Of a DNA stretch of 64,000 nucleotides, positions 1 to 59,968 are shown piece by piece. Location of the stretch: sequence record NC_071015.1; one strand, 5' to 3'. The number at the start of each line of letters is the position of its first letter. Positions within the stretch are counted from its first letter, which is position 1. The notes beneath the pieces are model-generated. The model saw only the letters and a list, made by a program, of their open reading frames with translations. It was not told the origin of the DNA and did not search any database. The translations under genes and the position numbers were made by a program.

Positions 1-1212
1 AGTAGAGTTACTCTCACAGATCCAGAAACGACCGACGTATTCAGTCGCCAAGGCATTACGGTCAATTGCCTCTACATCCCCTACCATCATTACCAGGTTA
101 TTTGACCCGCTGACGATGTAGTTAGGAGCCCGACCTGCAGCAGTGATGGTTGGGTGTTGATACTGTACGTAGGTATTGAGCCACGCAGAGCGATTGATGT
201 CGCGTTCCAACACATCCTGGTTATAGATGTAGTAGAGGTTCTTTACACGACCGTCATACGCACGAATTAACCCTACAACCCACCCGTTACCTTCTTGACA
301 GAAAGCAGAGTTTTCTTGGTCTGTTCCCAATCCTTCAAAGGAACCAGTAATCGGGGGTGGGAGGTAGATACCGGAACCATAATACCCGAACGGTAACTCA
401 GACTGCATTAAGTAGTCTTCAGAAACCGGTTCTGTTTCAGCAATGATGCGTGTCAACCCAGCTGGGGTCGAATACAAATCCGAACGGGTTCCGTCAGCAT
501 CCTGTTGAGGAGTAGCAGTAAAAGCATTTGGCACATTGCCCAAAGCCACATCAGAAGGCAATACGCCGTGTGGATTTTGGTAGTTGCGAATGTGGGTCAT
601 GATAGCACCCCACTTCAATTTCTGGATATAATCTAAGTGATCATACACATCCGTCTGAAGTTTTTCCAAGGCACTAAGTTGCGCAGTACTGTTTTTAATC
701 TGGTCATTACGGAACAGCGTAAACAGTTCAATCAGCCCACCGAACCCTACCAACTCATTTGGGTTCTGAATATCGTGACTGTGCCAGGCTGGATAATAGG
801 TTAACGGTTTTCCCGTGATCTGGGTATACCAGTCTACCGGCTTCCCGGTGATGACCATGTCTTCCAACATTTGAAGCAGAGTCTTGGTTGAGATAATCGG
901 CATCCCAACACGCTGATAAATGACGTCTAACTCCCCACCACTTGCGAGAATGTGGTCCTTTACTTCTATATAAAGGAAGACACTCTTACCAGTGCGCTTC
1001 GTTAAATCAGTTACCCCTTCAACAGCTTCGAAGTCAGTCCCAGGAATTAAGTCTAACCCGCCTTTTAATACCCGAAGCGAATCCCCGTAAAAGGGACCTT
1101 CTTCTGGGACGATCCAAGGGGGAGAGATTTTACTGAGATCGACATTGTCTTCTTTCTTGTACTCAGCTTTCTTTGCTGTGTAGTCGATCTCGACAATATG
1201 AATGTCTTTCAT
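1..1212 (-). CDS. Tail fibre/baseplate protein, phiKZ gp131-like family paralog (3'-truncated by window edge; absent from ORF track)
   Basis: Manual translation from ATG at 1212: MKDIHIVEIDYTAKK...PWIVPEEGPFY...YPAWHSHDIQNPNELVGFGGLIE...NPHGVLPSDVALGNVPN; same frame is open at position 1. N-terminal motifs match the 1279-4908 and 4961-5719 proteins. Confidence 0.75.
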   Translation of the reverse strand, partial: MKDIHIVEIDYTAKKAEYKKEDNVDLSKISPPWIVPEEGPFYGDSLRVLKGGLDLIPGTDFEAVEGVTDLTKRTGKSVFLYIEVKDHILASGGELDVIYQRVGMPIISTKTLLQMLEDMVITGKPVDWYTQITGKPLTYYPAWHSHDIQNPNELVGFGGLIELFTLFRNDQIKNSTAQLSALEKLQTDVYDHLDYIQKLKWGAIMTHIRNYQNPHGVLPSDVALGNVPNAFTATPQQDADGTRSDLYSTPAGLTRIIAETEPVSEDYLMQSELPFGYYGSGIYLPPPITGSFEGLGTDQENSAFCQEGNGWVVGLIRAYDGRVKNLYYIYNQDVLERDINRSAWLNTYVQYQHPTITAAGRAPNYIVSGSNNLVMMVGDVEAIDRNALATEYVGRFWICESNST

Positions 1213-1278
1213 TGAAACCTCGACAAATAAACTATGGAGCGATCAAAAGATCGCCCCAATAGTTTTGATTATTTTATT

Positions 1279-4200
1279 TTAGGAAATAAAATCTTGATCC
1301 AGCAGAATAGCAGAAGCGTCACCGATGTCGAATACTGACCCCGTTGTAGACAAGATTCCGGAACCTTGACGTTGTGCAGTAACTTGTGCACCGTCCATAG
1401 TAAAGCGATTATACGGAATAATGTTTTCGATCTGACTCGGACCCGTAATGATTTTAGCGATCATTGACTGGGAGCTGGTTTCAGGACGAACATCTTGCGA
1501 GATGGCATATTGAGCCTGACCATTGGCATAATAAAGGTAAGCATAGAACACTTTATTAGCCGGGGTAGGATCCACCGTTTGGATGTCGATATAGGTCGCA
1601 GGAATGTCGTACATCTTACCTGCTAGTAGCACGTTATCCATCTTGTTGAAATACACCACGAACTGAGACACCAACAGGTTACTCATCCCTACTTGCAATG
1701 AGTTACTCAAGTTGTTGCTAACCATCGCGTCATACAACGAACCGTTATTGCCGTAAACATAGTTCTGGCTAACGATCCCTGCACCTTCCATGATGTTCTG
1801 ACTCTGAAGCGGACTACCCTGCCCGTTACCTGGAGAAACCACCCATTTGTTTTCAGGACCCACATGGTTTTGACGGAAGTTACTCATGCGAATAATTTCT
1901 GTCCCGTTGAGTCTGAATTCATAAATGATATCTAAGGTCGAACGGTCAGCTGGCGCATGATAGCGAGCTAGACTTCGTACCACAGCAGTACCGATACCGG
2001 AATTGGTTATCCCGTTGCCGGTGACTAAGTTGATGGAGCTGTGTTCAAGGTTATTCCCGTCGACATACGTTTGGCCATAGAACTGTTGGAAAATAGCATC
2101 CGCGTCATAGGTAATGATTTTTACCGGACTTGTAAAGGTAATGGAAACATCATCGTAATACTGGTACCCATCTTTGGTGACAGGTGAGCCAGCCGCATTA
2201 ACTTTACAAAGCACTGCCGCTACACGAATCGTACGACCGTTAGCACTCGCCTCACCTGCTTGGAAAAGATGATAAATTTCACCTTTATCGGCAGTAAAGA
2301 TCTGTACCAACGTCCAACTGTCACTAACCTGCCCAGTATTAAATCCGGCCGCAGCTAAACGCGGTTTAAAATCACGATCAATGGATTTAGCTACATTGTA
2401 CACCGTGGTCGGGGTGAACGTAACGACGTTATTCACAAGTTTTGTACTGTTGTTGCGTACCAACAGCCCATCACCTTTTGCACCATTACCTTCTACGCCC
2501 AATAAGCGACCCCAAGCATCCGCACCGAAGATCTGTTTATATCGATCTTTCTGATTCGGGTTAGTAGCATCCAGCCCACAAATATTCAGAACCAGATTTG
2601 GACCCAAATTGGTTTTGTAGGTTTGAGAAACAAACGGGAAGTAGTTAACCGTGTTACCAGAAAGTTGCATCTGTGAAATTGAGCCATTATGACTCCAGGT
2701 GCTGGTTAAGAACGCCATAGGGCGTACAATCCACTCCGTCTGTTGTTTCTCGTTTACCTGACGACCCATTACCGCAGATTTGGTCCAATCGTCCGTGTCC
2801 ATAGTCATGTGGACCTGGTTAATAAAGAGTGCACCTAACCCTACTGGGTTATACTCTTTACACACTGACGACGACTGCTGTGCCCATGGGTTTACCGTAG
2901 GGGACATGGGGTCGATTAATCCGGTAGGATCCTTCAGATACTTCGCTGTCCCAATGACGATCTGAACAGGCAAGAACCATCCTGCATACGCCCCCAGATA
3001 CACAATCTTGCCATCATGCAAATTAGCAAAACCTTGATGCTCGGTTGAGTTAACCACATTCGGCAACACTTTCCATTGGTAGTACGCAGTGTAATCCGGG
3101 CTGTTCCCTACATCGTTAATATCAAGGGTATACAGTCGCTGTTCACCAGGACCTGGAGTAAATTCAATCAGCGGTGTAGTACCTTTGGTGACTTTAATCC
3201 GAGCACGGTAAGGGACCACGTTTGCAAAGGCTTGTCCAGCAAATGCACGACTCCAGATTTGGAAGTGCATCATCATGTCATAGGTGTTGGCGATCCCGGT
3301 CTTACTGCAATACCCGGCAAGCATGCGGTACGTCCAACTTTGGAGAATTGGATTTTTCCATTTAACGTGGTATTCAGAAATACCCTTTTCCCCAGCCGGA
3401 CCCAATCCCTGCACGCGCTCATACGGGGTAAAGATGGTATCCTGAACGCGAACTTTGCCGTTGGCTTGTCGGTATGACAATTTAGCCTGACGGAACTCAC
3501 TTCCTACCAGCACAAAGAACAAGAATGCTTCCAGTGCACGAGACCCACCCCCGGTTTCATTAAACGGCGGGGTATCAGGGCGGTAAGTAAGTAATTCAGC
3601 GTGGCTTAACCCAAACACTACCATCACGGCATCAGTCGGGTCATTCGGGGTCATGATAAAGGAGCGGCGAAATTCTCGGTTCTTTGCCAACCAGTTACTG
3701 TCGGTGATTCGGGTTAACACATGACGATCTGGATTTAATGTCCCCTTGGTTTCACACCAGAACCAGATGTTCTTATCCTCATCACCCACAATCATGAACT
3801 GATCGTTAGACCCGTTGACAACCATGTTAAGATTAGCGCCGGCTGCAATAGCAGTGGGGTGCTGATAAGTGTATCCCGTGAACTCCCAATCAGGAGTGGC
3901 GGAATCCCAGTTTGCAGAACGCAGGAAATACAGCCCTTTGGTTTTCCCGTTATTGCGACGTTGCAGAATCAGCATCGTCCCATCACTCTCTACTACCGCA
4001 GCCATTTGCTGATACAGTCCACCCATTCCTTCATATGACCCAGAGATTGACGGAGGAATAAAGGTATCAGAACCGTAACGTAACAGCGGTAAAGAACCAG
4101 AAGGGAAGAGTTTATCGTTTCGTCCAGCAGCCGCGTCAGCAGCGATAGCGGCGTTGTACGGGGTAATGTGCAGATCGTCTCGCAGACCTTCAATGGTTTC

Positions 4201-4908
4201 TTCCAAAGTTGCAGTCAGGAAGTTATCCACGTTTCCCAGTCCGATTACATCTTTATATACACCGTGGGCATCTTGCTTGTTAGCGATATGACTATTGATC
4301 AGTTTGAGCAAGACTTCTTTATAGCTTTTGATGTACGAATCCAGACGTTCCTGGAAAATATCCAGTACCTCATCAGCAATGTTCCCAGTTACCCCTTCAA
4401 ACTGCGCAATGCGGTTAATCTGAGTAACCAGATCGGTAAAGCCAAAGATCTCGTACGCCAGATCGTGCTGGTGAATTTCCGGGACAAACCACAGCGGTTT
4501 ATTCTGGATGTTTTCATAGATCACGTAGCGATCATCTTCATAGATGCTGTGAAGCATGTTGAGGATGTCATTGGTGATCTTGTTGAAGTTGCCGACAACC
4601 TGATAGTCAACGTACCATTCAGTCAGCTCTTCTTTTAACAGACGAACAAACAGTCCCACGGGCTTACCGGTATACTGGGTTAATTTCCCCATGAGTCCGT
4701 AGAACTCGTAATCCTCATTTTCAACCAACAGCTTGCCTGCTTTATCAAACATCTTAAACGATTTCTGATAGAACGGTGCGCCAGGAGGAATTACGATATT
4801 GTTGTTCTTGACAGTCCGGCGAAACATGTATTCACCGGTGACTTTATTAAACCGACTGGTACCGGTTAAGTCCAGTTTATAAAGTGGGATGTCTTCTTTG
4901 ATCATCAT
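1279..4908 (-). CDS. Large tail fibre/receptor-binding protein (phiKZ gp131-like family)
   Basis: 1209 aa. N-terminal PxxAPFY / PxxHxHD..FGF module, tail-fibre motif HGVYKDVIGLGNVDNF, long beta-rich body. Confidence 0.7.
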   Translation of the reverse strand: MMIKEDIPLYKLDLTGTSRFNKVTGEYMFRRTVKNNNIVIPPGAPFYQKSFKMFDKAGKLLVENEDYEFYGLMGKLTQYTGKPVGLFVRLLKEELTEWYVDYQVVGNFNKITNDILNMLHSIYEDDRYVIYENIQNKPLWFVPEIHQHDLAYEIFGFTDLVTQINRIAQFEGVTGNIADEVLDIFQERLDSYIKSYKEVLLKLINSHIANKQDAHGVYKDVIGLGNVDNFLTATLEETIEGLRDDLHITPYNAAIAADAAAGRNDKLFPSGSLPLLRYGSDTFIPPSISGSYEGMGGLYQQMAAVVESDGTMLILQRRNNGKTKGLYFLRSANWDSATPDWEFTGYTYQHPTAIAAGANLNMVVNGSNDQFMIVGDEDKNIWFWCETKGTLNPDRHVLTRITDSNWLAKNREFRRSFIMTPNDPTDAVMVVFGLSHAELLTYRPDTPPFNETGGGSRALEAFLFFVLVGSEFRQAKLSYRQANGKVRVQDTIFTPYERVQGLGPAGEKGISEYHVKWKNPILQSWTYRMLAGYCSKTGIANTYDMMMHFQIWSRAFAGQAFANVVPYRARIKVTKGTTPLIEFTPGPGEQRLYTLDINDVGNSPDYTAYYQWKVLPNVVNSTEHQGFANLHDGKIVYLGAYAGWFLPVQIVIGTAKYLKDPTGLIDPMSPTVNPWAQQSSSVCKEYNPVGLGALFINQVHMTMDTDDWTKSAVMGRQVNEKQQTEWIVRPMAFLTSTWSHNGSISQMQLSGNTVNYFPFVSQTYKTNLGPNLVLNICGLDATNPNQKDRYKQIFGADAWGRLLGVEGNGAKGDGLLVRNNSTKLVNNVVTFTPTTVYNVAKSIDRDFKPRLAAAGFNTGQVSDSWTLVQIFTADKGEIYHLFQAGEASANGRTIRVAAVLCKVNAAGSPVTKDGYQYYDDVSITFTSPVKIITYDADAIFQQFYGQTYVDGNNLEHSSINLVTGNGITNSGIGTAVVRSLARYHAPADRSTLDIIYEFRLNGTEIIRMSNFRQNHVGPENKWVVSPGNGQGSPLQSQNIMEGAGIVSQNYVYGNNGSLYDAMVSNNLSNSLQVGMSNLLVSQFVVYFNKMDNVLLAGKMYDIPATYIDIQTVDPTPANKVFYAYLYYANGQAQYAISQDVRPETSSQSMIAKIITGPSQIENIIPYNRFTMDGAQVTAQRQGSGILSTTGSVFDIGDASAILLDQDFIS

Positions 4909-13134: not shown

Positions 13135-15996
13135 ATGAGTTCGACAAAATCACTACCCAGAGGGTATGATGTTTTAGACAAGACTCAATTGAGGGGTAAG
13201 ATAGACGACTCCCCTCTCTCTCAGAATCTTCGTTCTTTAATTGTTAAAGATAAGACCCTCAGGGGCGACAAAGACACTGAGAATAAAACCAAACCGCCGG
13301 TTAGTAAAGTCAAAAGCATCTCTGACATAATCAGTAATAATATCCAGGCCTCAATGGACCTGCGTACGATTACGCACTACGTCAAGCGGGCTGAGCAAAT
13401 TTGGACTACTCTTCTGTTAAAACCAAACGGAGAACAACGCCAACTGCTCATTTATGATACAGAAAGCTCTGATGTAAAAAATAGCAAGCTCCATGAGCTT
13501 TTACTCCAGAAGGTGGAAAACTACTTTACAACAAAGTACCCCTTTGAAGAGTTAGCCCCTCAAATTATTAAAGATGTCCTTTTCCGTACCGGTTCTTATG
13601 TTCACGTGAGCATGAGTCACGCCGTACTGGACCATCTGATCAACGGCATGGAAGTAAGCGGAAGTGAGAATTTCCGTAACACTGCGACCGAGGTTCTCAC
13701 CAAACACTTTGTGGGTGGTAATCTGAACCGTGCTAAGAACGTGGGGTACATTCGTAAAGACCGTCTGGCGCAAAATAACCTGACTGGGTTTGAAGCACTC
13801 TATGGAACAACCGGTAATGCCGGTGAAGAGTATACTCTGGTTCACCCTGATCTTAAATGGACCTTTACCGATAACCCAATCGTTATTAAAGCGGGTTCTT
13901 TAGCACAGAGGATGCGTGAAGACCGACTCCGTGAAATGAGTGGGTTAGAAGGTATTGACTCTGCTATTGGCAATGTCTTTAAGAAAAAGAAAGGGGCACA
14001 TAAAGCCAACAATAACCGGGTGAAGATTCCGGAGAAAAAGGCCTTAGAGAAAGAACTCGATAACCTTTATCCTAACCGTAACTATAACCACATTGAATCG
14101 CTCTCTGTTCGTAAAGGGAAGTTCTACAGTGGTAATGGTCGCGGAATTGGCATCGACTTCCATTGGCCGTCTGAGGCCGTTGTGAACGTGATGGTAAACG
14201 GCGAAATCGGTAAACCGTTTGGTCATATCTTCTTGATCGATCCGGATACCGGTGAACCGTTGAAGAACACCTCAGATGTGAAGTTCTATCAGACAGCACG
14301 TGGAACCGGTGGCGCTGGGGATGTATCCAGTAAACCGAAGATGGGGTCCATCAACGACATCGTCAGTCACATTCGTACCGTTGCACAAGGTAAAGAGTGT
14401 ACGGAAGATATGGGTTGGATGGCGGAGTTCGCATCGGCAACTCTTGAGAAAGAGTTTATTGAAGGTTTCCTCAATGGGGATCTGCATAAAGATGTGAGCG
14501 TTTCGTTAACCGAAGAGAACAAGAAACTCTTCTTGTCCCGTGCTTTGCGTGATCAGGGTGTGCGCGCAGTCTTCGTTCCTTCTGAATACGTAACCTATGT
14601 GGCTACCGACTTCAGTCGTTTGGGTGTCGGACGTTCACTGGTCGATGAAGCCAAATTGCACATTGCTCGTTTAGCAGTACTGGAAACAGCAGACATGTTG
14701 GCCCAGATTGAGAACTCTATCTCTCATACGCTTTTGGAAGTTACCCCAGAGCGTGAAGATGTGGATGTTCGCAACACCGTTGCGATGGCTCGTGATGAGT
14801 GGTTTGCTGGTAACCCAACGCTGCATGACATTCTGGGTTATAATAACGTTTCTATCGATGCGATCCTTGATCGGTTTAAAGAGCAGTCGGTTACCGTTAA
14901 GATCAATCCGGGGGATAACCCGCATATCGTGGCTCCGGATATTAATGCTTCACAGGCTCAACGTGAACCATTGAAATCCATTGAACCAGAGACACGTGAA
15001 AACCTGCTGAACACCATTGCTGGTTTCTTCGGGCTGAAACGTAGCTGGTTGGAAGATACAGGTGATGGCAATGACTTTGCTATCGAAGCCCTGGCTGACC
15101 AGGAGCTGCTGCGTAATCAGACCAACGAGTACTCTCGTATCTTCTCTCGCTTCTTCACTGACATCATGCGCAAACACATGCGCGTTAACGAACCGCTTAT
15201 CACTGAGTTAGTGGATATCATTAAAGACAATAAAACGCTTTATGAAAAACCTGATCAGACTGGTGAGTTGAAAGTTGACGATGAGACTAAGAAGAAGATC
15301 GATAAAGAAGGTGATGAGGATACGACAGTTGAGGATCTGGAACAGATTGAAGTGGTCTTAAAAGACTTCCTTAATACGTTCTATGTGGTTCTTCCAACGC
15401 CTGCCATTACCGACTCGCTGAATAAGCTGGAAGATAAGATTGAAGCAGTTGAGAAACTGGTTGACTCTTGGGTTAACTTGGGTGGTGGTTCTAAACTGCT
15501 GAAACGTCGTGCCGACGCTGCTGGGTTGGTGGGTGATGACGTGGTAGAGAACATCAAAGCTATCCTGCTCAACGAAGCGTTCGAACGGTTTAACCTGCCG
15601 ATGCCATTTGAGGCAATACTGAACAATGGCCGTACTGGTGGTATGATGTCTTATATTACCAAAGCGGTTGATCTGGACAGTAACGTTATTCAGTTCCTGA
15701 CAGAGTGGGAAAAAGGTATTCGTAAAAACAACACTAAAGCTGACAAGCTTCAAGAGCGTGTTGATAAAGCAAATAACCCAGACCCAATCGAGGAGCCAAT
15801 CGATCCTGACGCCCCTGCTGAAATCACTGACGACAGTACCATCACTGATGACTCAGAGATAACTCCTACGGATGACACCAATCCAGAAGAAGTTGTTGAA
15901 GAAGGTACCACGCCAGAAGAAGAGCAGAAACAGGCTGAAGAAATAAATGATGAAACTGCCCCTAAAGAAGGTGGCGACGACATTTGGTCTGAATGA
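13135..15996 (+). CDS. Portal protein (phiKZ gp129-like)
   Basis: 953 aa, AAGGAG RBS; size, synteny, G-x-E sites (SGSE, TGFE, SGLE) in the N-terminal third, very acidic C-terminal tail. Confidence 0.65.
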   Translation: MSSTKSLPRGYDVLDKTQLRGKIDDSPLSQNLRSLIVKDKTLRGDKDTENKTKPPVSKVKSISDIISNNIQASMDLRTITHYVKRAEQIWTTLLLKPNGEQRQLLIYDTESSDVKNSKLHELLLQKVENYFTTKYPFEELAPQIIKDVLFRTGSYVHVSMSHAVLDHLINGMEVSGSENFRNTATEVLTKHFVGGNLNRAKNVGYIRKDRLAQNNLTGFEALYGTTGNAGEEYTLVHPDLKWTFTDNPIVIKAGSLAQRMREDRLREMSGLEGIDSAIGNVFKKKKGAHKANNNRVKIPEKKALEKELDNLYPNRNYNHIESLSVRKGKFYSGNGRGIGIDFHWPSEAVVNVMVNGEIGKPFGHIFLIDPDTGEPLKNTSDVKFYQTARGTGGAGDVSSKPKMGSINDIVSHIRTVAQGKECTEDMGWMAEFASATLEKEFIEGFLNGDLHKDVSVSLTEENKKLFLSRALRDQGVRAVFVPSEYVTYVATDFSRLGVGRSLVDEAKLHIARLAVLETADMLAQIENSISHTLLEVTPEREDVDVRNTVAMARDEWFAGNPTLHDILGYNNVSIDAILDRFKEQSVTVKINPGDNPHIVAPDINASQAQREPLKSIEPETRENLLNTIAGFFGLKRSWLEDTGDGNDFAIEALADQELLRNQTNEYSRIFSRFFTDIMRKHMRVNEPLITELVDIIKDNKTLYEKPDQTGELKVDDETKKKIDKEGDEDTTVEDLEQIEVVLKDFLNTFYVVLPTPAITDSLNKLEDKIEAVEKLVDSWVNLGGGSKLLKRRADAAGLVGDDVVENIKAILLNEAFERFNLPMPFEAILNNGRTGGMMSYITKAVDLDSNVIQFLTEWEKGIRKNNTKADKLQERVDKANNPDPIEEPIDPDAPAEITDDSTITDDSEITPTDDTNPEEVVEEGTTPEEEQKQAEEINDETAPKEGGDDIWSE

Positions 15997-16022
15997 CAAA
16001 AAAAAATAAATACTAAGTGAAA

Positions 16023-16050
16023 CCCTACTCATCCTGATGGATGAGTAGGG
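16023..16050. terminator. Intrinsic terminator hairpin (convergent junction)
   Basis: CCCTACTCATCC-TGAT-GGATGAGTAGGG; A-run to the left, TATG to the right. Confidence 0.75.
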
Positions 16051-16071
16051 ATCGCTTTATGTTTATTGCTA

Positions 16072-16686
16072 TTACGCTTCAGCAGATTCTTCTGCGGTTA
16101 CGTAGTCTTCGGTAGACGTGCTGATCTTACCGCGTACCAGAGCCAGGATTGGATCGCGTGCAAATACGCCACCAACGATAACGCCGTTTGCTACAACGGA
16201 GCCCGCGACCAGACGATACTGTTCGCTGTCGTTGATTTTGTCAATGCACTGCAGGCCTGCTTGCAGGCCTGCACCTACCAGACCGGCAGCAATAGTTACG
16301 CCGGTGATTTCCAGCGCGTTGTAACGCACTTCGGTTTCTTCCGGCAGGAATTTTTGCTGCAGTTTGTTACTGATTACCATGCTAGCAGCAGTACCTACTG
16401 CTGAAACGATCCCGGAGCCAACAACGCTTTCCCAGTTGTAACCAGATACTTTATTGGCAGCGTTGCCACGAATTGCAGATTTCACTTCTTCAGTTACAGG
16501 AGTTTCCTCAACAACAGTGGTGGTGGTTTCGATGTTTTCTTCAGCAACGATGGTGTTTTCAACGGTCATGGTAGATTCCTTACTATGGTTTTTGGAAAGT
16601 TCAGGGTTGTTTGACTTGGGAGCTACGCCAGCTTTAGCAACTGGTTTACAGTTAGATCCCAGATATTTATTGCGTTTGCCAGACAT
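16072..16686 (-). CDS. Hypothetical Gly/Ala-rich, probably membrane-associated protein, likely early
   Basis: AGGAGG RBS; three hydrophobic GxxxG/AxxxG-rich segments; TATATTAC upstream. Confidence 0.55.
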   Translation of the reverse strand: MSGKRNKYLGSNCKPVAKAGVAPKSNNPELSKNHSKESTMTVENTIVAEENIETTTTVVEETPVTEEVKSAIRGNAANKVSGYNWESVVGSGIVSAVGTAASMVISNKLQQKFLPEETEVRYNALEITGVTIAAGLVGAGLQAGLQCIDKINDSEQYRLVAGSVVANGVIVGGVFARDPILALVRGKISTSTEDYVTAEESAEA

Positions 16687-55557: not shown

Positions 55558-56559
55558 TCAACTTGATTTTTTAACGACAGCACTTACCTGGAATCCGGAA
55601 ATACCTTTTTCTCGCAGATAATCATAGACAGTGGCTTGGTGCATCAAACGTTTTTTGCTAAAGTTACTTTGAAGCCACGCATTCGCCATGGAATAATAAT
55701 CTTCATCCCATTTCGTTTTATCGGTTTCTATGTCCAATGAAAGAGTGGTAACCTCATATTCATCAAACACATCAGGGGCTTTATTTTCCACATACTTAAC
55801 ATTTTCTTTCCAGTCGGCAATGGTTAATCGATTGCTCTCCAGTGCGGCCATCAAGCTTGATTGCAAATACGATCGACCTTTATTTTCATTGATTGCTTTT
55901 GAAACTAATGAATCAATAGGAACGCTCCCTGTTGAACTGCTAATAACTTTAACAATCCCAGCTAATCCTTCGGACAAGATTTTGATACCCTTCCCTAAGG
56001 CAACGGCTTGTTTATTATCGTTTTCATTATTTTTAGATAATTTATCGACAATTTTTGTAAGCCCATCAATGGATTTTTTAACGCTTTCGTTGAACGAATC
56101 CAAATCTTTTCCGGCGTTTGAATTCTCTTTCTTTAATTTATCAATAAGGGATTCTCCATCTGCAATTAAAAAAGAGAATTTAATATTAGCGTTAAGTTGA
56201 GATTCATCAATAGTTTTTATCTCAGAAATCAAATGTTCTATCTTTTTAATGAGACCTTCGGATTTCTCCGCGACATTGATCGTCGCACCAGGCTTTTTAC
56301 CTGTAATTTTATTTACAACATTACGAATCCAATCCATGACAGCCCGAGCAAGTTTCTTAACCCACTCTACAATTGACATTGCCCCTCGTTTAACCGAATC
56401 GAGAAACCCTTCTTGCCCTGCATATAGACCGGCATCGTTCGCATGAAGCTTTAACACACTTATTGCATAACGACCATCGGGACTATTTACGTTGCCGTTG
56501 TTAATACTTTCACAGCCGGACAACATGGTACTAAAATGCTCAACTTCCCCAAAGTTCAT
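55558..56559 (-). CDS. Head protein paralog family member 5, with extra C-terminal domain
   Basis: Start moved to ATG 56559; MNFGEVEHFSTMLSGCE...AGQE|GFLD; later AALE|S followed by a W-D-E-D-Y...NFS domain. Confidence 0.7.
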   Translation of the reverse strand: MNFGEVEHFSTMLSGCESINNGNVNSPDGRYAISVLKLHANDAGLYAGQEGFLDSVKRGAMSIVEWVKKLARAVMDWIRNVVNKITGKKPGATINVAEKSEGLIKKIEHLISEIKTIDESQLNANIKFSFLIADGESLIDKLKKENSNAGKDLDSFNESVKKSIDGLTKIVDKLSKNNENDNKQAVALGKGIKILSEGLAGIVKVISSSTGSVPIDSLVSKAINENKGRSYLQSSLMAALESNRLTIADWKENVKYVENKAPDVFDEYEVTTLSLDIETDKTKWDEDYYSMANAWLQSNFSKKRLMHQATVYDYLREKGISGFQVSAVVKKSS

Positions 56560-56600
56560 CTTTTTATTCCTCTTGACAAAATAAATATAACAAAAGATCC

Positions 56601-56626
56601 CTCCTACTCCCCGAAGAGAGTAGGAG
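56601..56626 (-). terminator. Terminator hairpin
   Basis: CTCCTACTC-8nt-GAGTAGGAG, then GGATCTTTTG on the minus strand. Confidence 0.65.
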
Positions 56627-56633
56627 GAGATCA

Positions 56634-57173
56634 TTAACCGTACACGTAGTTATGCAGGCGCTGTTTGGCAACCGGACTGAACATGTTTTCGAACTTAACC
56701 ATGTCGTAGTTTTCCAGGAAGCGGCGCTTGTCACGGGCGTTCTCACTGTACATGACAATGAACAGCATGAAACGTTTGTAACGCAACACTTCTTCGCTTG
56801 GCAGGCTGGATTCGAGCGGGAACAGCGGAGCTACGATGTTGTCGTAGCTGAACAGGTTCGGGCTTTCCGAGATGGTCACCACGAAGTGATCCAGGATCGC
56901 CTTTACCTGTGCATCGTTAAGTTCCAGAGCACCCCAAATGGTGCGCATGAAATCACGCTGAAGTACTTTACGTGTTTCCAGATCACCAGTAACAGTCCCA
57001 GCCAGGAAATCACGGAACCCATCGATACCTTGTTTATAGATATCAACCACATCGGTCGTGGGTTTCTGAGTTGCCACTTTCATGCTGGTATCAAGCGTAG
57101 CTTCAGCAGTAACCTGCTCGTCTACGGCGTTGACACGTTTTTCAATTTTCGGTGTAGTGAACTTGTCACTCAT
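56634..57173 (-). CDS. Conserved hypothetical protein
   Basis: 179 aa, GAGGA RBS. Confidence 0.55.
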   Translation of the reverse strand: MSDKFTTPKIEKRVNAVDEQVTAEATLDTSMKVATQKPTTDVVDIYKQGIDGFRDFLAGTVTGDLETRKVLQRDFMRTIWGALELNDAQVKAILDHFVVTISESPNLFSYDNIVAPLFPLESSLPSEEVLRYKRFMLFIVMYSENARDKRRFLENYDMVKFENMFSPVAKQRLHNYVYG

Positions 57174-57185
57174 CGCTTAGTCCTC

Positions 57186-57668
57186 TTATTGTTTACCGTT
57201 TTGGGCTTTGCTCTTTTCAGCGGCCGCAAGTTTATCGGCGATCTTCTTCTTCTCAATGAGAAGATCTTCGGTACCACGGTTGATACCTTCCAAAATATCC
57301 TCAATATGCGTGATTGGCATATCCAGGTAATCTTTCACGGTTAAGAATTTTTCATACTCTCTAAACCCGAAGGCGTATCCGAAACCTTTCGCGGAGAAGA
57401 TGTGAGCAAAATCCCTTCTCTGGTGATTGTACTTGATGTGATTAGAAAGGGGTTCTTTCTCATTCACATGTCCGTACATCATCATCACAATACGCCGTTC
57501 CAGAATAGCTTGCTTAATAGGGTCTTTTTCATTTGCCCCTTCTATAAAGAGCTGAAGGGCTCGATCTAAAAGGGGCGCTGAAACTTGATCTTCCCGTCTT
57601 AGGAAAGAGTTTCCTCTACTGTGCTCGCTGCTTCGGTTCTGATACCAATCATCATTCGGGTTCGGTCT
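57186..57668 (-). CDS. Downstream ORF probably reached by -1 frameshift from the 57599-59209 gene (or a 100-aa protein from GTG 57488)
   Basis: Frame is open upstream of GTG 57488 to about 57740 with no ATG/GTG/TTG; the extension (APLLDRALQLFIEGANEKDPIKQAILERRI) looks protein-like. Confidence 0.5.
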   Translation of the reverse strand, partial: RPNPNDDWYQNRSSEHSRGNSFLRREDQVSAPLLDRALQLFIEGANEKDPIKQAILERRIVMMMYGHVNEKEPLSNHIKYNHQRRDFAHIFSAKGFGYAFGFREYEKFLTVKDYLDMPITHIEDILEGINRGTEDLLIEKKKIADKLAAAEKSKAQNGKQ

Positions 57669-59209
57669 AAAAAATTTAGAATCGGATCGACCGGTGTAAA
57701 CCCAGACAAGCGAGAAGCGCTCACTGAATCGTTTTCTTTCTTACAGGCCGGACAGACGTTGTTCATAATCCCCACAAATGTGTAGGTCATACGAGGAGCC
57801 AACGTGATCACTTTTTCCAGCGCAGAGAAGTACACTTCTTCGTCTTCGTTGAAGATATCAATCAGACCTTCGCTAAAGCCCTCTGGATCTTCTTCACGCG
57901 TGATCGTCTTGATCTCGGTATCTTCGGTACCCGGCTCTGGCAGCTCTTCATACAGACGGAACCAGTGCATGTATTCGTGCCCACGCAGGCTGGCCAGATA
58001 TTCACGACGTTTGGTTCGGAAGACGTCCATGTTCGGGAACTGAATTGCCAGCTCACGCAGTTCAGGGTTAATACGTTCCGCCATCATTTCATAACAACGG
58101 AAATATTCTTCCAGAGACGGAACCCCCAAGACGATGCGAGAACCGGTGTTACCCAGGTCACAGGTCAGATCCAACGGTTCACCGTTTTCATCCACATACA
58201 CCGGAGCGTATTTGGCCAACTCTTCACGGGACAGCTTACGTCCGTTAGAGGTGATCTCAAAGAGAATGTTGCGGCGTTCTTCCGGCATGGCATTTTCGAG
58301 AGTCAGTACCATACTGGCTGGATCGATGATGATCACTTCGGAGTGTTTGCACTCATTGGCCAGGCAATAGGTACGATACGCTACCCCTTTCGGTGCACTG
58401 ATTGCTAACAGCGCCATGGCGATATGTTCTAAATCGTTAACTTTGATGTAACGTTTCAGTTCATAGTGGTCAGCCACATCTTTCACGCTGTGATAAGACA
58501 GACGATCAAGAATGAAGTTCACCAGAATCTGAGAAATACCGGCGCGCTCCAAGTGGATGGAGGTAACGTTATAACGCTCTCCGTATTGACGCAGTTTGGT
58601 AGACACGTCGTTGATCAGACGAATCAGATCTGACGGGGTCGGAATCTTCACGCGCAGAACGATCAGGGAGTTAAGCAGGACGATAGTGAAACTGTCCGGG
58701 GCATGAACCGCTGCACGGAAGTTGCGACGCATACGAGAGCGCACGTCAAGCTTGCTGTCCGGTTTCGGTGTCACGGACTGAATCAGACCCAGACGCAGAT
58801 CGCCTTTGGCCGGTACGGTATTCACCCAGCCCGTACGTTCAACCAGGGAAACGTTATCAGAACGCATCAGATGACGGTCAGTATACGCATAAAGGAAACG
58901 CGTATAGTTGATCAGCATCGGGATCAGTTCGTCGTAATCCATGCCTTTGAAGTGCTCATCGGCCAGGGTATCGAAGTTGAGCTTGAGGGCGTTAACGTCC
59001 CGTGTCTCTTTACCTTTATCCGCAGCTTCTTGTGCTTGTTGCCAAGCCATATACGATACTGCGGTCCGGTAGATTACCTTGTGTACTTCTTCGGCTGTTC
59101 CTAAGAACATAGGAAGAATGGCAACTTCATCGCTGGTTCCGGATCCCAGAACCATATCACGCAGCGCGTTGGTCAGATCCGGCTGCGGATCTTTTTGTTC
59201 TTCAGACAT
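57599..59209 (-). CDS. Conserved phiKZ-like protein with Cys-pair motifs; possible tail/baseplate assembly chaperone
   Basis: 536 aa from ATG 59209 (AAGGAA RBS); CLANEC and CPAC motifs; ends DPILNFLDR... Confidence 0.5.
   Translation of the reverse strand: MSEEQKDPQPDLTNALRDMVLGSGTSDEVAILPMFLGTAEEVHKVIYRTAVSYMAWQQAQEAADKGKETRDVNALKLNFDTLADEHFKGMDYDELIPMLINYTRFLYAYTDRHLMRSDNVSLVERTGWVNTVPAKGDLRLGLIQSVTPKPDSKLDVRSRMRRNFRAAVHAPDSFTIVLLNSLIVLRVKIPTPSDLIRLINDVSTKLRQYGERYNVTSIHLERAGISQILVNFILDRLSYHSVKDVADHYELKRYIKVNDLEHIAMALLAISAPKGVAYRTYCLANECKHSEVIIIDPASMVLTLENAMPEERRNILFEITSNGRKLSREELAKYAPVYVDENGEPLDLTCDLGNTGSRIVLGVPSLEEYFRCYEMMAERINPELRELAIQFPNMDVFRTKRREYLASLRGHEYMHWFRLYEELPEPGTEDTEIKTITREEDPEGFSEGLIDIFNEDEEVYFSALEKVITLAPRMTYTFVGIMNNVCPACKKENDSVSASRLSGFTPVDPILNFLDRTRMMIGIRTEAASTVEETLS
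57668..57677 (-). other. Candidate -1 ribosomal slippery site A AAT TTT TTA
   Basis: In-frame codons AAT TTT TTA (N-F-L) give X XXY YYZ twice (A AAT TTT and T TTT TTA); the -1 frame is the 57186 ORF. Confidence 0.55.
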
Positions 59210-59239: not shown

Positions 59240-59968
59240 TTATTGTGCAACAGCTTCGGCAGACTCTTCAGGTTGAGTCGCTTCTGGTTTTGGTTCCAGT
59301 TCGTTTTCCGTGTGAACGCGAGACAGGTAGTCATAAGAAATGGCTTCCAGTACCTTGACGGTCTTCTCACTTTCAGAAAGTTCACCGTCCACATCTTCAC
59401 GCAGACGGGCCAGGGTATCTTCCACTACCAGGGCGTGTGGTTCAGCACGGGTAACTTCGACGTACAGCTCTTCAGCAAAGTTCTGAATAGTAGTACCGAT
59501 GTCCAGGCATTCGGTAGCCACGACTTCTTCCTGTTCAGCTTTCAGCAGCGGTTGCAGACGAGAGACGCGGTTGTCGATCAGGAACAGCTCAAGCGCGATG
59601 GCTTTGAGGTCGAGCACCAAAGTATGCTCGATGATCTTTTTCTCGATCATGCCGTTCAGCAGAGCGACATAAGAGAAGAGTTTGAACACTTCTCCAATAT
59701 TACGCTTCAATCCATCGATCATGTCTTGCGGAGATTTAAACTCCGTGTCTGTCGCCGGCTGGGTACCTTTATTGATCTGTCGTACCGCATTGCCCAGTAC
59801 AGAATCAAAGTCAAGCTGTTGGGCACCGAGCTTACGGGCTAAGCGGCGGTTCTCACGGTTGGCAACCGCAGACGGAGCTGCACGACCTTTCGCATTGCTG
59901 ATGCTTTTTTGCTTAGCACGAGCGTTGCGTTTCTGGGCACGTTTCTGAACAGAATTTTTGTTGGACAT
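59240..59968 (-). CDS. Hypothetical protein with highly basic N-terminal arm
   Basis: MSNKNSVQKRAQKRNARAKQK...RENRRLARKLG, then an acidic helical body. Confidence 0.55.
   Translation of the reverse strand: MSNKNSVQKRAQKRNARAKQKSISNAKGRAAPSAVANRENRRLARKLGAQQLDFDSVLGNAVRQINKGTQPATDTEFKSPQDMIDGLKRNIGEVFKLFSYVALLNGMIEKKIIEHTLVLDLKAIALELFLIDNRVSRLQPLLKAEQEEVVATECLDIGTTIQNFAEELYVEVTRAEPHALVVEDTLARLREDVDGELSESEKTVKVLEAISYDYLSRVHTENELEPKPEATQPEESAEAVAQ

Follow-up and report, generated by a model that had tools for sequence, protein, structure and literature searches.

A conserved candidate -1 frameshift site links two annotated genes at the cg18 locus of phiKZ-like jumbo phages

Two overlapping reading frames at the cg18 locus of Kosakonia phage Kc263

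We analysed a stretch of 64,000 nucleotides from sequence record NC_071015.1 (the window in what follows), focusing on two adjacent genes of its minus strand, here termed gene A and gene B, which may form a single unit joined by a programmed -1 frameshift. The window derives from Kosakonia phage Kc263, a phiKZ-like jumbo phage, and the 2.2-kb region under study is 100% identical to accession MZ348422 (253,740 bp, genus Branisovskavirus). Gene A is assigned to phrog_4585, the profile of which stops at the end of the gene, and its orthologues are phiKZ gp077, PhiPA3 gp074, 201phi2-1 gp136, Goslar gp081, RAY gp267 and EL gp47. The notes of the PhiPA3 record tie gene A to phiKZ gp077, 201phi2-1 gp136 and EL gp47, and the downstream open reading frame (ORF) to 201phi2-1 gp135. 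The supplement of Prichard et al. (2023) enters the gene as Chimalliviridae core gene cg18, "hypothetical protein", with the orthologues Goslar gp081 and RAY gp267. The locus itself is intact and contains no broken genes. The features needed for the following analysis are:

57599..59209, minus strand: gene A, 536 amino acids (QYN80003), product of the 0 frame, "hypothetical protein" in GenBank
57186..57488, minus strand: gene B as annotated, 100 amino acids with a GTG start (QYN80002), hypothetical, phrog_19747
57668..57674, minus strand: slippery heptamer T_TTT_TTA, phased X_XXY_YYZ, with P-site codon TTT (F513) and A-site codon TTA (L514), conserved
57671..57677, minus strand: overlapping heptamer A_AAT_TTT, phased X_XXY_YYZ, found in Kc263 only
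57599..57667, minus strand: 0-frame tail of gene A, 22 codons plus stop, a predicted C-terminal helix belonging to the short form only
57186..57668, minus strand: -1-frame extension, 160 codons plus stop, predicted to belong to the long form only
57489..57740, minus strand: portion of the -1-frame ORF that precedes the annotated GTG; it is start-less, lacking ATG, GTG and TTG

In the frame of gene A, the codons CTA AAT TTT TTA GAC occupy positions 57679-57665. The heptamer T_TTT_TTA contained in them sits 23 codons ahead of the gene A stop, leaving 22 sense codons between TTA and that stop. Relative to gene A, gene B is in the -1 frame, which stays open between 57740 and 57186 and has the GTG at 57488 as its first start codon. 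A ribosome changing frame at the heptamer would thus join the 514 residues encoded through TTA to 160 codons of the -1 frame, giving a predicted long form of ~674 amino acids. All of these details (the 536-amino-acid gene, the heptamers at 57679-57665, the -1-frame ORF from 57740 to 57186, the GTG at 57488 and the ~674-amino-acid product) had been given in a preliminary description of the locus and were reproduced here. A chance origin of the layout is unlikely, since phased TTTTTTN heptamers are rare in the window (only 3 per 22,217 codons of long ORFs) and the same arrangement recurs in 39/39 related genomes.

A second phased TTTTTTA is present at 56167-56173 (minus strand) within the ORF 55558..56634, 205 codons before its stop. 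There, the -1 frame closes after 10 codons, and the occurrence is probably due to chance.

Conservation of the candidate slip site across 39 genomes

The comparative dataset comprised 39 distinct genomes, namely 27 named phages, seven IMG/VR or metagenome loci and five divergent metagenome representatives (15-18% identity). The named phages included Sureiya, AH04, Survivor, N1M2, pEt-SU, OBP, CF8, ZPAH34, PS1, SXP01, D9, AhC3_1, VP4B, pTD1, 2 TSL-2019, Miami, RisingSun, FishSpeaker, an EL-like phage, PhiPA3, the phiKZ-like PA7, SPN3US, Goslar, Ea35-70, RSL2 and JM-2012. The IMG/VR scan contributed six loci, and a repeat word-indexed protein search with a diverse alignment returned the same close set. 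Protein identity of gene A among these genomes falls to ~15%.

In all 39 genomes, the downstream ORF is shifted by -1 relative to gene A, and a run of six to eight T encoding Phe-Phe is found 42-123 nt upstream of the gene A stop. The run is phased as T_TTT_TTN in 38/39 cases. The exception is PhiPA3, which has G_TTT_TTT (4685-4691 of the fetched locus), that is, a T6 run in codon phase 1; its -1 frame and extension are otherwise typical. In every genome the -1 frame is already open ahead of the T-run, and the extension amounts to 149-186 stop-free codons in those whose contig includes its end (one contig stops short of it).

The nucleotides around the run are constrained beyond what the protein requires at the first position. 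The residue preceding Phe-Phe spans seven amino acids, yet the wobble base of its codon is T in 33 of the 34 tabulated genomes. In the same set, the P-site codon is TTT throughout (34/34), whereas the A-site codon is TTC in 23, TTT in 10 and TTA in one, which is Kc263 itself. The slip-site phenylalanine F513 is invariant among 58 diverse relatives. The preliminary description had pointed to two overlapping heptamers, and both are correctly phased in Kc263; only T_TTT_TTN is conserved, however, and A_AAT_TTT is restricted to this phage. The closest relatives of Kc263 (81, 70 and 60% identity) carry T_TTT_TTC, read G_AAT, C_ACT or G_CAT where Kc263 has A_AAT, and therefore do not have the A_AAT_TTT motif.

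Homopolymers are error-prone in sequencing, and Kc263 is represented by a single sequence deposited under two accessions; a sequencing error or a recent homopolymer frameshift could in principle have split one long gene in two. This explanation is already refuted by the distribution of the layout and keeps a practically negligible probability: the same two-frame arrangement is found in 39 independently sequenced genomes or metagenome contigs, a single-frame version occurs in no relative examined, and the 0-frame tail past the run shows conservation of its own, in length as in sequence. In agreement with this, in-frame fusions of A and B were not seen when a family profile was searched against 1.84 billion representative sequences: of the 684 family members retrieved (E<=1e-3), the best 150 were inspected and all end within ~40 residues of the profile end. 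A pair that is never found fused or parted from its slip site would be expected if both forms are needed.

The N-terminal part of gene A varies in length. Some lineages have an additional 100-300 residues (630-658 amino acids in total), including SPN3US (1144-3114 of the fetched locus) and the relatives P0105, P0142 and P0188, and a form of 383 amino acids is also present (P0166). The C-terminal part bearing the cysteine pairs and the slip site is always retained in gene A homologues.

Evidence for translation of the -1 frame from the slip site

Next, we considered whether the start-less part of the -1 frame behaves like protein-coding sequence. Using the stop-to-stop -1-frame ORF as the query, tblastn gave unbroken, single-piece matches to 37 other phage records, each beginning at the heptamer or ahead of it. 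A synonymous-site analysis of 19 distinct gene A sequences gave a sharp boundary at the same place. Among pairs of identical residues, the use of identical codons was 0.494 over residues 1-504 vs 0.784 from residue 512 to the stop, and the top 12-codon windows of synonymous conservation in gene A start at residues 507-513 with a value of 0.84 (mean 0.50, standard deviation 0.075; 4.5 standard deviations above the mean). Judged from these codon comparisons, the jump in synonymous conservation is the signature of dual coding beginning at the slip site.

The codon-position pattern of substitutions points in the same direction. In the stretch between the gene A stop and the annotated gene B start, the proportions of differences at codon positions 1, 2 and 3 are 0.59, 0.47 and 0.71, compared with 0.43, 0.34 and 0.64 in the annotated B domain and a flat 0.40, 0.29 and 0.33 in the A/B overlap. 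The start-less stretch therefore shows coding-type periodicity in the aligned sequences, with the reservation that the alignment was built in the -1 frame and somewhat favours that frame. The single-piece matches and the periodicity bear out the earlier impression that the start-less extension looks protein-like.

The annotation itself suggests a simpler arrangement, in which A and B are two separate genes: B would be started independently, from the annotated or a non-canonical start, by coupling or by re-initiation, and the open -1 frame would be a by-product of constraint on the tail of A or on an RNA element. Two coding sequences (CDSs) are indeed entered in every GenBank record examined, B has its own PHROGs families, and some genomes offer an ATG or GTG soon after the gene A stop, as in Vibrio phages at 8 nt. 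Across the dataset, however, neither the position nor the codon of the presumed start is conserved. Annotated B starts are scattered 8-236 nt past the gene A stop and use ATG, GTG, TTG or CTG, and for 17 of the 27 named phages (9 among the first 16) the -1 frame offers no ATG, GTG or TTG from its upstream stop to the annotated start. The called lengths of B vary even inside clusters of 90% identity, with 66, 72, 103 and 119 amino acids in a single cluster (e.g. P0236-P0250), which is how the missing start shows itself in practice. Shine-Dalgarno (SD) pairing is also weak, with a median of -3.0 kcal/mol at annotated B starts vs -5.7 for gene A and -5.55 for the next gene.

Furthermore, independent initiation does not account for the protein conservation and coding periodicity that run through the start-less stretch, for an extra synonymous constraint that starts at the heptamer and not at the gene A stop, or for an open -1 frame that always extends back beyond the T-run. 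We consider two independently started genes very improbable on these grounds, and gene B is best read, from the comparative data, as the C-terminal part of a long form.

Altogether, the proposal made in the preliminary description, a programmed -1 frameshift yielding a short and a long product, withstood the comparative refutation tests that it named when these were applied to the 39 genomes: the slippery site is kept at the same Phe-Phe position in the homologues, no homologue has a stop between the slip site and the downstream ORF, and the downstream ORF has no conserved independent start, its candidate starts being scattered in position and codon and weak in SD pairing.

Proposed mechanism of the shift

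Taken together, conserved recoding at cg18, be it ribosomal or transcriptional, is strongly indicated by the comparative sequence data, and we hold it to be highly probable. Ribosomal -1 frameshifting in particular is the probable route by which short and long forms of cg18 would be produced. Gene A and "gene B" would then represent one recoding unit. Most ribosomes would finish gene A in frame at 57599 and yield the 536-amino-acid short form with its 22-residue helical tail. Some ribosomes would slip by -1 on T_TTT_TTA with tRNA-Phe in the P site and then read 160 codons to 57186. In the resulting long form of ~674 amino acids, a linker that is Pro-rich and flexible, together with ~130 residues of helical domain, would stand in place of the helical tail. 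For the efficiency of the shift we would guess a few percent, as for lambda G-T; a low value is assumed because no stimulatory RNA structure was found. The layout and the conservation of the slip site can be read directly from the genomes; the slip event itself and its efficiency we infer.

Both alternative C-termini have properties of their own. The 0-frame tail is exactly 22 codons long throughout the clade reaching from Kc263 to the Vibrio phages and in most cases closes with an acidic stretch and then Leu-Ser. In the AlphaFold2 model of gene A (predicted local distance difference test score (pLDDT) 75.9, predicted template-modelling score 0.75), the terminal helix covers residues 509-535. 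For the -1 extension, the model reaches a moderate pLDDT of 64 and shows ~31 residues of disordered, Pro-rich linker ahead of several helices, with a long helix at the end.

The same long form could also arise by standard translation if the phage RNA polymerase added one U at the T-run in some transcripts. Such transcriptional slippage deserves attention in these phages, which have their own unusual multisubunit RNA polymerases. The run reaches T7 or T8 in many lineages, and the T favoured at the preceding wobble position would lengthen it as well. Efficient bacterial transcriptional slippage, on the other hand, usually wants runs of ~9 A or T, so that runs of T6-T8 are shorter than what is usually needed. 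In 23/34 genomes the run is just T6 and is closed by a conserved C (T_TTT_TTC), and Kc263 has T6 too; selection for a slipping polymerase should prefer TTT to TTC as the second Phe codon. The phasing, moreover, is canonical for tandem tRNA slippage in 38/39 genomes. Because T6 with the conserved C predominates and the phasing is that of tRNA slippage, we favour the ribosome over the polymerase and regard transcriptional slippage as unlikely.

Several points weigh against ribosomal frameshifting as described here. Besides the longer runs just mentioned, the PhiPA3 heptamer has a non-canonical first position. Searches for a stimulatory element within 90 nt downstream of the site gave no stable or common hairpin in 27 genomes, with z-scores against shuffled sequences of -2.2 to +1.8, around 0. 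RNAalifold applied to 17 sequences returned eight pairs, none of them compensatory, and an Rfam search was without a match. The lack of any recognised RNA stimulator of a ribosomal shift also speaks for a slipping polymerase. Finally, the evidence for the frameshift is sequence comparison, from which we infer the protein products. A stimulatory RNA element is not obligatory for -1 frameshifting, and lambda G-T works without one.

One nucleotide block in the overlap is invariant in the alignment:

57603..57616, minus strand: GAGGA...TCTTTC block just upstream of the gene A stop, identical in 17/17 aligned genomes, without covariation and dual-coding

The invariance of this block may simply reflect dual coding. 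As a separate observation, it resembles a Shine-Dalgarno sequence, yet no start codon is located at a suitable distance.

Comparison with known recoding systems

A conserved -1 frameshift in tail assembly genes is known from lambda G/GT and P2 E/E+E' (Xu, Hendrix & Duda 2004, as cited in PMC5009743). The cg18 pair resembles these systems in several respects: a -1 slip on a simple heptamer near the upstream gene's 3' end, an N-terminal body shared by the (predicted) two products, an extension of similar size, no obvious RNA stimulator, and a layout that is conserved where the sequence is not, in a pair that is never resolved to a fusion. The differences are equally clear. Neither sequence nor fold relation to the classic chaperones was found in Pfam, PDB or BFVD, where the BFVD matches belong to other families. 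The shared body of cg18 has 514 amino acids vs ~100-140 in the chaperones, and cg18 lies outside the interval between tube and tape-measure genes. In addition, the 0-frame tail following the slip site is conserved in cg18, and the carriers of cg18 are contractile-tailed jumbo phages with a phage nucleus.

A further parallel is Escherichia coli dnaX (tau/gamma), whose two products arise from a single gene, in a set ratio, via a -1 slip on a homopolymeric heptamer. In dnaX, it is the shorter product that results from the shift, which depends on an SD-like element upstream and a hairpin downstream. At cg18, neither of these stimulatory elements was seen, and the proteins are unrelated.

Possible relation to T4 gp26/gp51 and role in hub assembly

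To date, standard annotation resources say little about the pair. Pfam gave no match for gene A or for the 184-amino-acid -1-frame ORF, and for the 100-amino-acid ORF only a sub-threshold match to DisA-linker (E 0.096, 12.9 bits vs a cut-off of 25). The PHROGs matches of A and B are families of unknown function only. PDB fold searches with the models of gene A and of the extension returned only noise (E>1), and a PDB sequence search with the family profile found no match. Comparison of the gene A model with the predicted viral structures of BFVD by Foldseek was more informative. It listed jumbo-phage orthologues first and then proteins of 250-285 amino acids named "Baseplate hub assembly protein, bacteriophage T4-like", "Baseplate hub subunit" or "hub assembly chaperone" (E 1e-3 to 0.1, probability 0.84-1.0, target-normalised template-modelling score ~0.5).

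At the sequence level, the Pfam family PF12322 (T4_baseplate) was matched by 4 of the 58 diverse relatives, with a best E value of 1.2e-5, and phrog_150 ("baseplate hub") by one of them. Localisation of the PF12322 match, for which two batches of 10 relatives were scanned, gave one match, in P0106, which covers the C-terminal part including a CPxC motif. T4 gp26 and gp51 (taken from NC_000866) both fall in PF12322 and, by this shared family match, are paralogues. The CPxC motif is part of a feature of the shared body:

57743..58366, minus strand: two cysteine pairs, C282/C287 and C486/C489, presumed zinc site

C282, C287 and C486 are invariant, and C489 is kept in at least 90% of the 58 diverse relatives. 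Two cysteine pairs are also present in T4 gp26 (C82/C84 and C187/C190) and in gp51 (C85/C88 and C185/C186), and hhalign against T4 gp26 aligned the CPxC region with an E value of 3.8e-4. The cysteine pairs had earlier been likened to those of T4 gp26/gp51, and the fold matches in BFVD, the PF12322 matches and the paired cysteines of both T4 proteins all support the comparison. The proposed resemblance of the distal helix to the E'/T segment, by contrast, was supported by none of the Pfam or PDB fold searches.

Considering the predicted fold and weak sequence similarity, it is likely but unproven that the body common to both forms, though much larger, is very distantly related to T4 gp26/gp51. 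Parallels with the T4 proteins are the predicted-fold matches, the weak PF12322 matches and the two cysteine pairs including CPxC. T4 gene 26 (15803-16429, minus strand, in the fetched T4 region) also has two nested products, 26 and 26' (95 amino acids, internal start), which is a parallel and not evidence; unlike in cg18, the second T4 product comes from an internal start and is a truncation instead of an extension. Likewise, the T4 proteins have 208 and 249 amino acids compared with 536 in cg18, and T4 genes 26 and 51 adjoin the hub genes 27-29.

A number of results speak against this relationship and against a function derived from it. The hhalign match to gp26 has a probability of 36% and is a short, weak alignment, and that to gp51 has an E value of 0.018 with a probability of 2.6%. 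A search of the family profile with hmmsearch against all ORFs of the 35-kb T4 region gave nothing significant. The PF12322 match of P0106 scores 19.2 bits, below the gathering score of 24.5, and Kc263 gene A itself is among the proteins with no Pfam match. The genomic context does not point to a tail function either. In Kc263, cg18 is neither adjacent to recognised hub genes nor placed between the tail tube and tape-measure genes; it is found amid genes for RNA polymerase, helicase and DNA polymerase, away from the tail genes.

We therefore treat the function of the pair with caution. It is a tentative suggestion, with nearly as much for it as against it, that both forms work at a fixed ratio during assembly of the tail or baseplate hub. 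If so, each part would bind a partner of its own, the shared body one and the extension a second, in the manner of lambda G/GT. Regarding the tail or baseplate chaperone pair that had been proposed at the outset, the gp26/gp51-like fold and cysteine evidence lends some support to the baseplate side, whereas homology to lambda G/GT or P2 E/E' is not seen; the caveats attached to that proposal, a size well above that of typical chaperones (four times larger by our comparison) and a position not beside the tape-measure gene, proved correct. The records of OBP, N1M2 and ZPAH34 name the adjacent gp079 homologue a virion structural protein, and A and B carry no such label there. The text of the Goslar virion cryo-electron microscopy paper does not mention gp81/gp82.

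A more specific reading appears rather doubtful to us, namely that phiKZ-like jumbo phages with contractile tails have in the cg18 pair their long-missing equivalent of the lambda G/GT tail assembly chaperone. Were it true, the T4 gp26/gp51 hub-assembly family would be revealed as belonging to the same functional class, one in which two nested products in a set ratio couple the hub or tape measure to the growing tail, with a stimulator-free, family-wide shift on a U-run in the phages studied here.

Novelty and implications

A joined CDS at cg18 is annotated in none of the GenBank records examined. A full-text literature search, with most subscription journals outside its reach, gave no report of a frameshift in phiKZ gp077/cg18. 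A frameshift at cg18 is also absent from a 2016 recoding review, the PRFect paper, the core-genome paper, transposon-mutagenesis preprints and the Goslar virion structure preprint.

The gene concerned is a core gene common to all nucleus-forming jumbo phages that is listed as a "hypothetical protein". If the frameshift is true, the locus is mis-annotated as two genes in every GenBank record examined, and a ~75-kDa protein is missing from the proteomes. It would also constitute a new example of recoding, one that is conserved very widely and affects a family of proteins with no relation to the classic chaperone pairs. The bare U-run heptamer, strictly conserved with no recognisable stimulator, is of interest for the mechanism of frameshifting. 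Beyond this, the pair offers a testable handle on the assembly of tail and baseplate in phiKZ-like phages and could illuminate the poorly understood T4 proteins gp26 and gp51.

Product names and neighbouring genes

Odd product names occur on the Kc263 record and on gene A orthologues, including "apolipoprotein A-I", "apolipophorin-III", "large tegument protein deneddylase", "ATP synthase subunit b" and "ZipA-like cell division protein". The last of these labels, found on some gene A orthologues, was supported by none of our searches. On the whole, this naming looks like over-reading of weak matches to helical or low-complexity proteins.

The neighbours of A and B in Kc263 are genes of the phage multisubunit RNA polymerase, a UvsW-like helicase and a DNA polymerase, and they include homologues of phiKZ gp078, gp079 and the virion RNA polymerase subunit gp080. 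The immediate flanks accompany A/B in most of the fetched loci:

56634-57173, minus strand: gene for a protein of 179 amino acids, phrog_14374
59240-59968, minus strand: gene for a protein of 242 amino acids, by position the phiKZ gp078 homologue

Functions are unassigned for both flanking genes, which may share a module with A/B.

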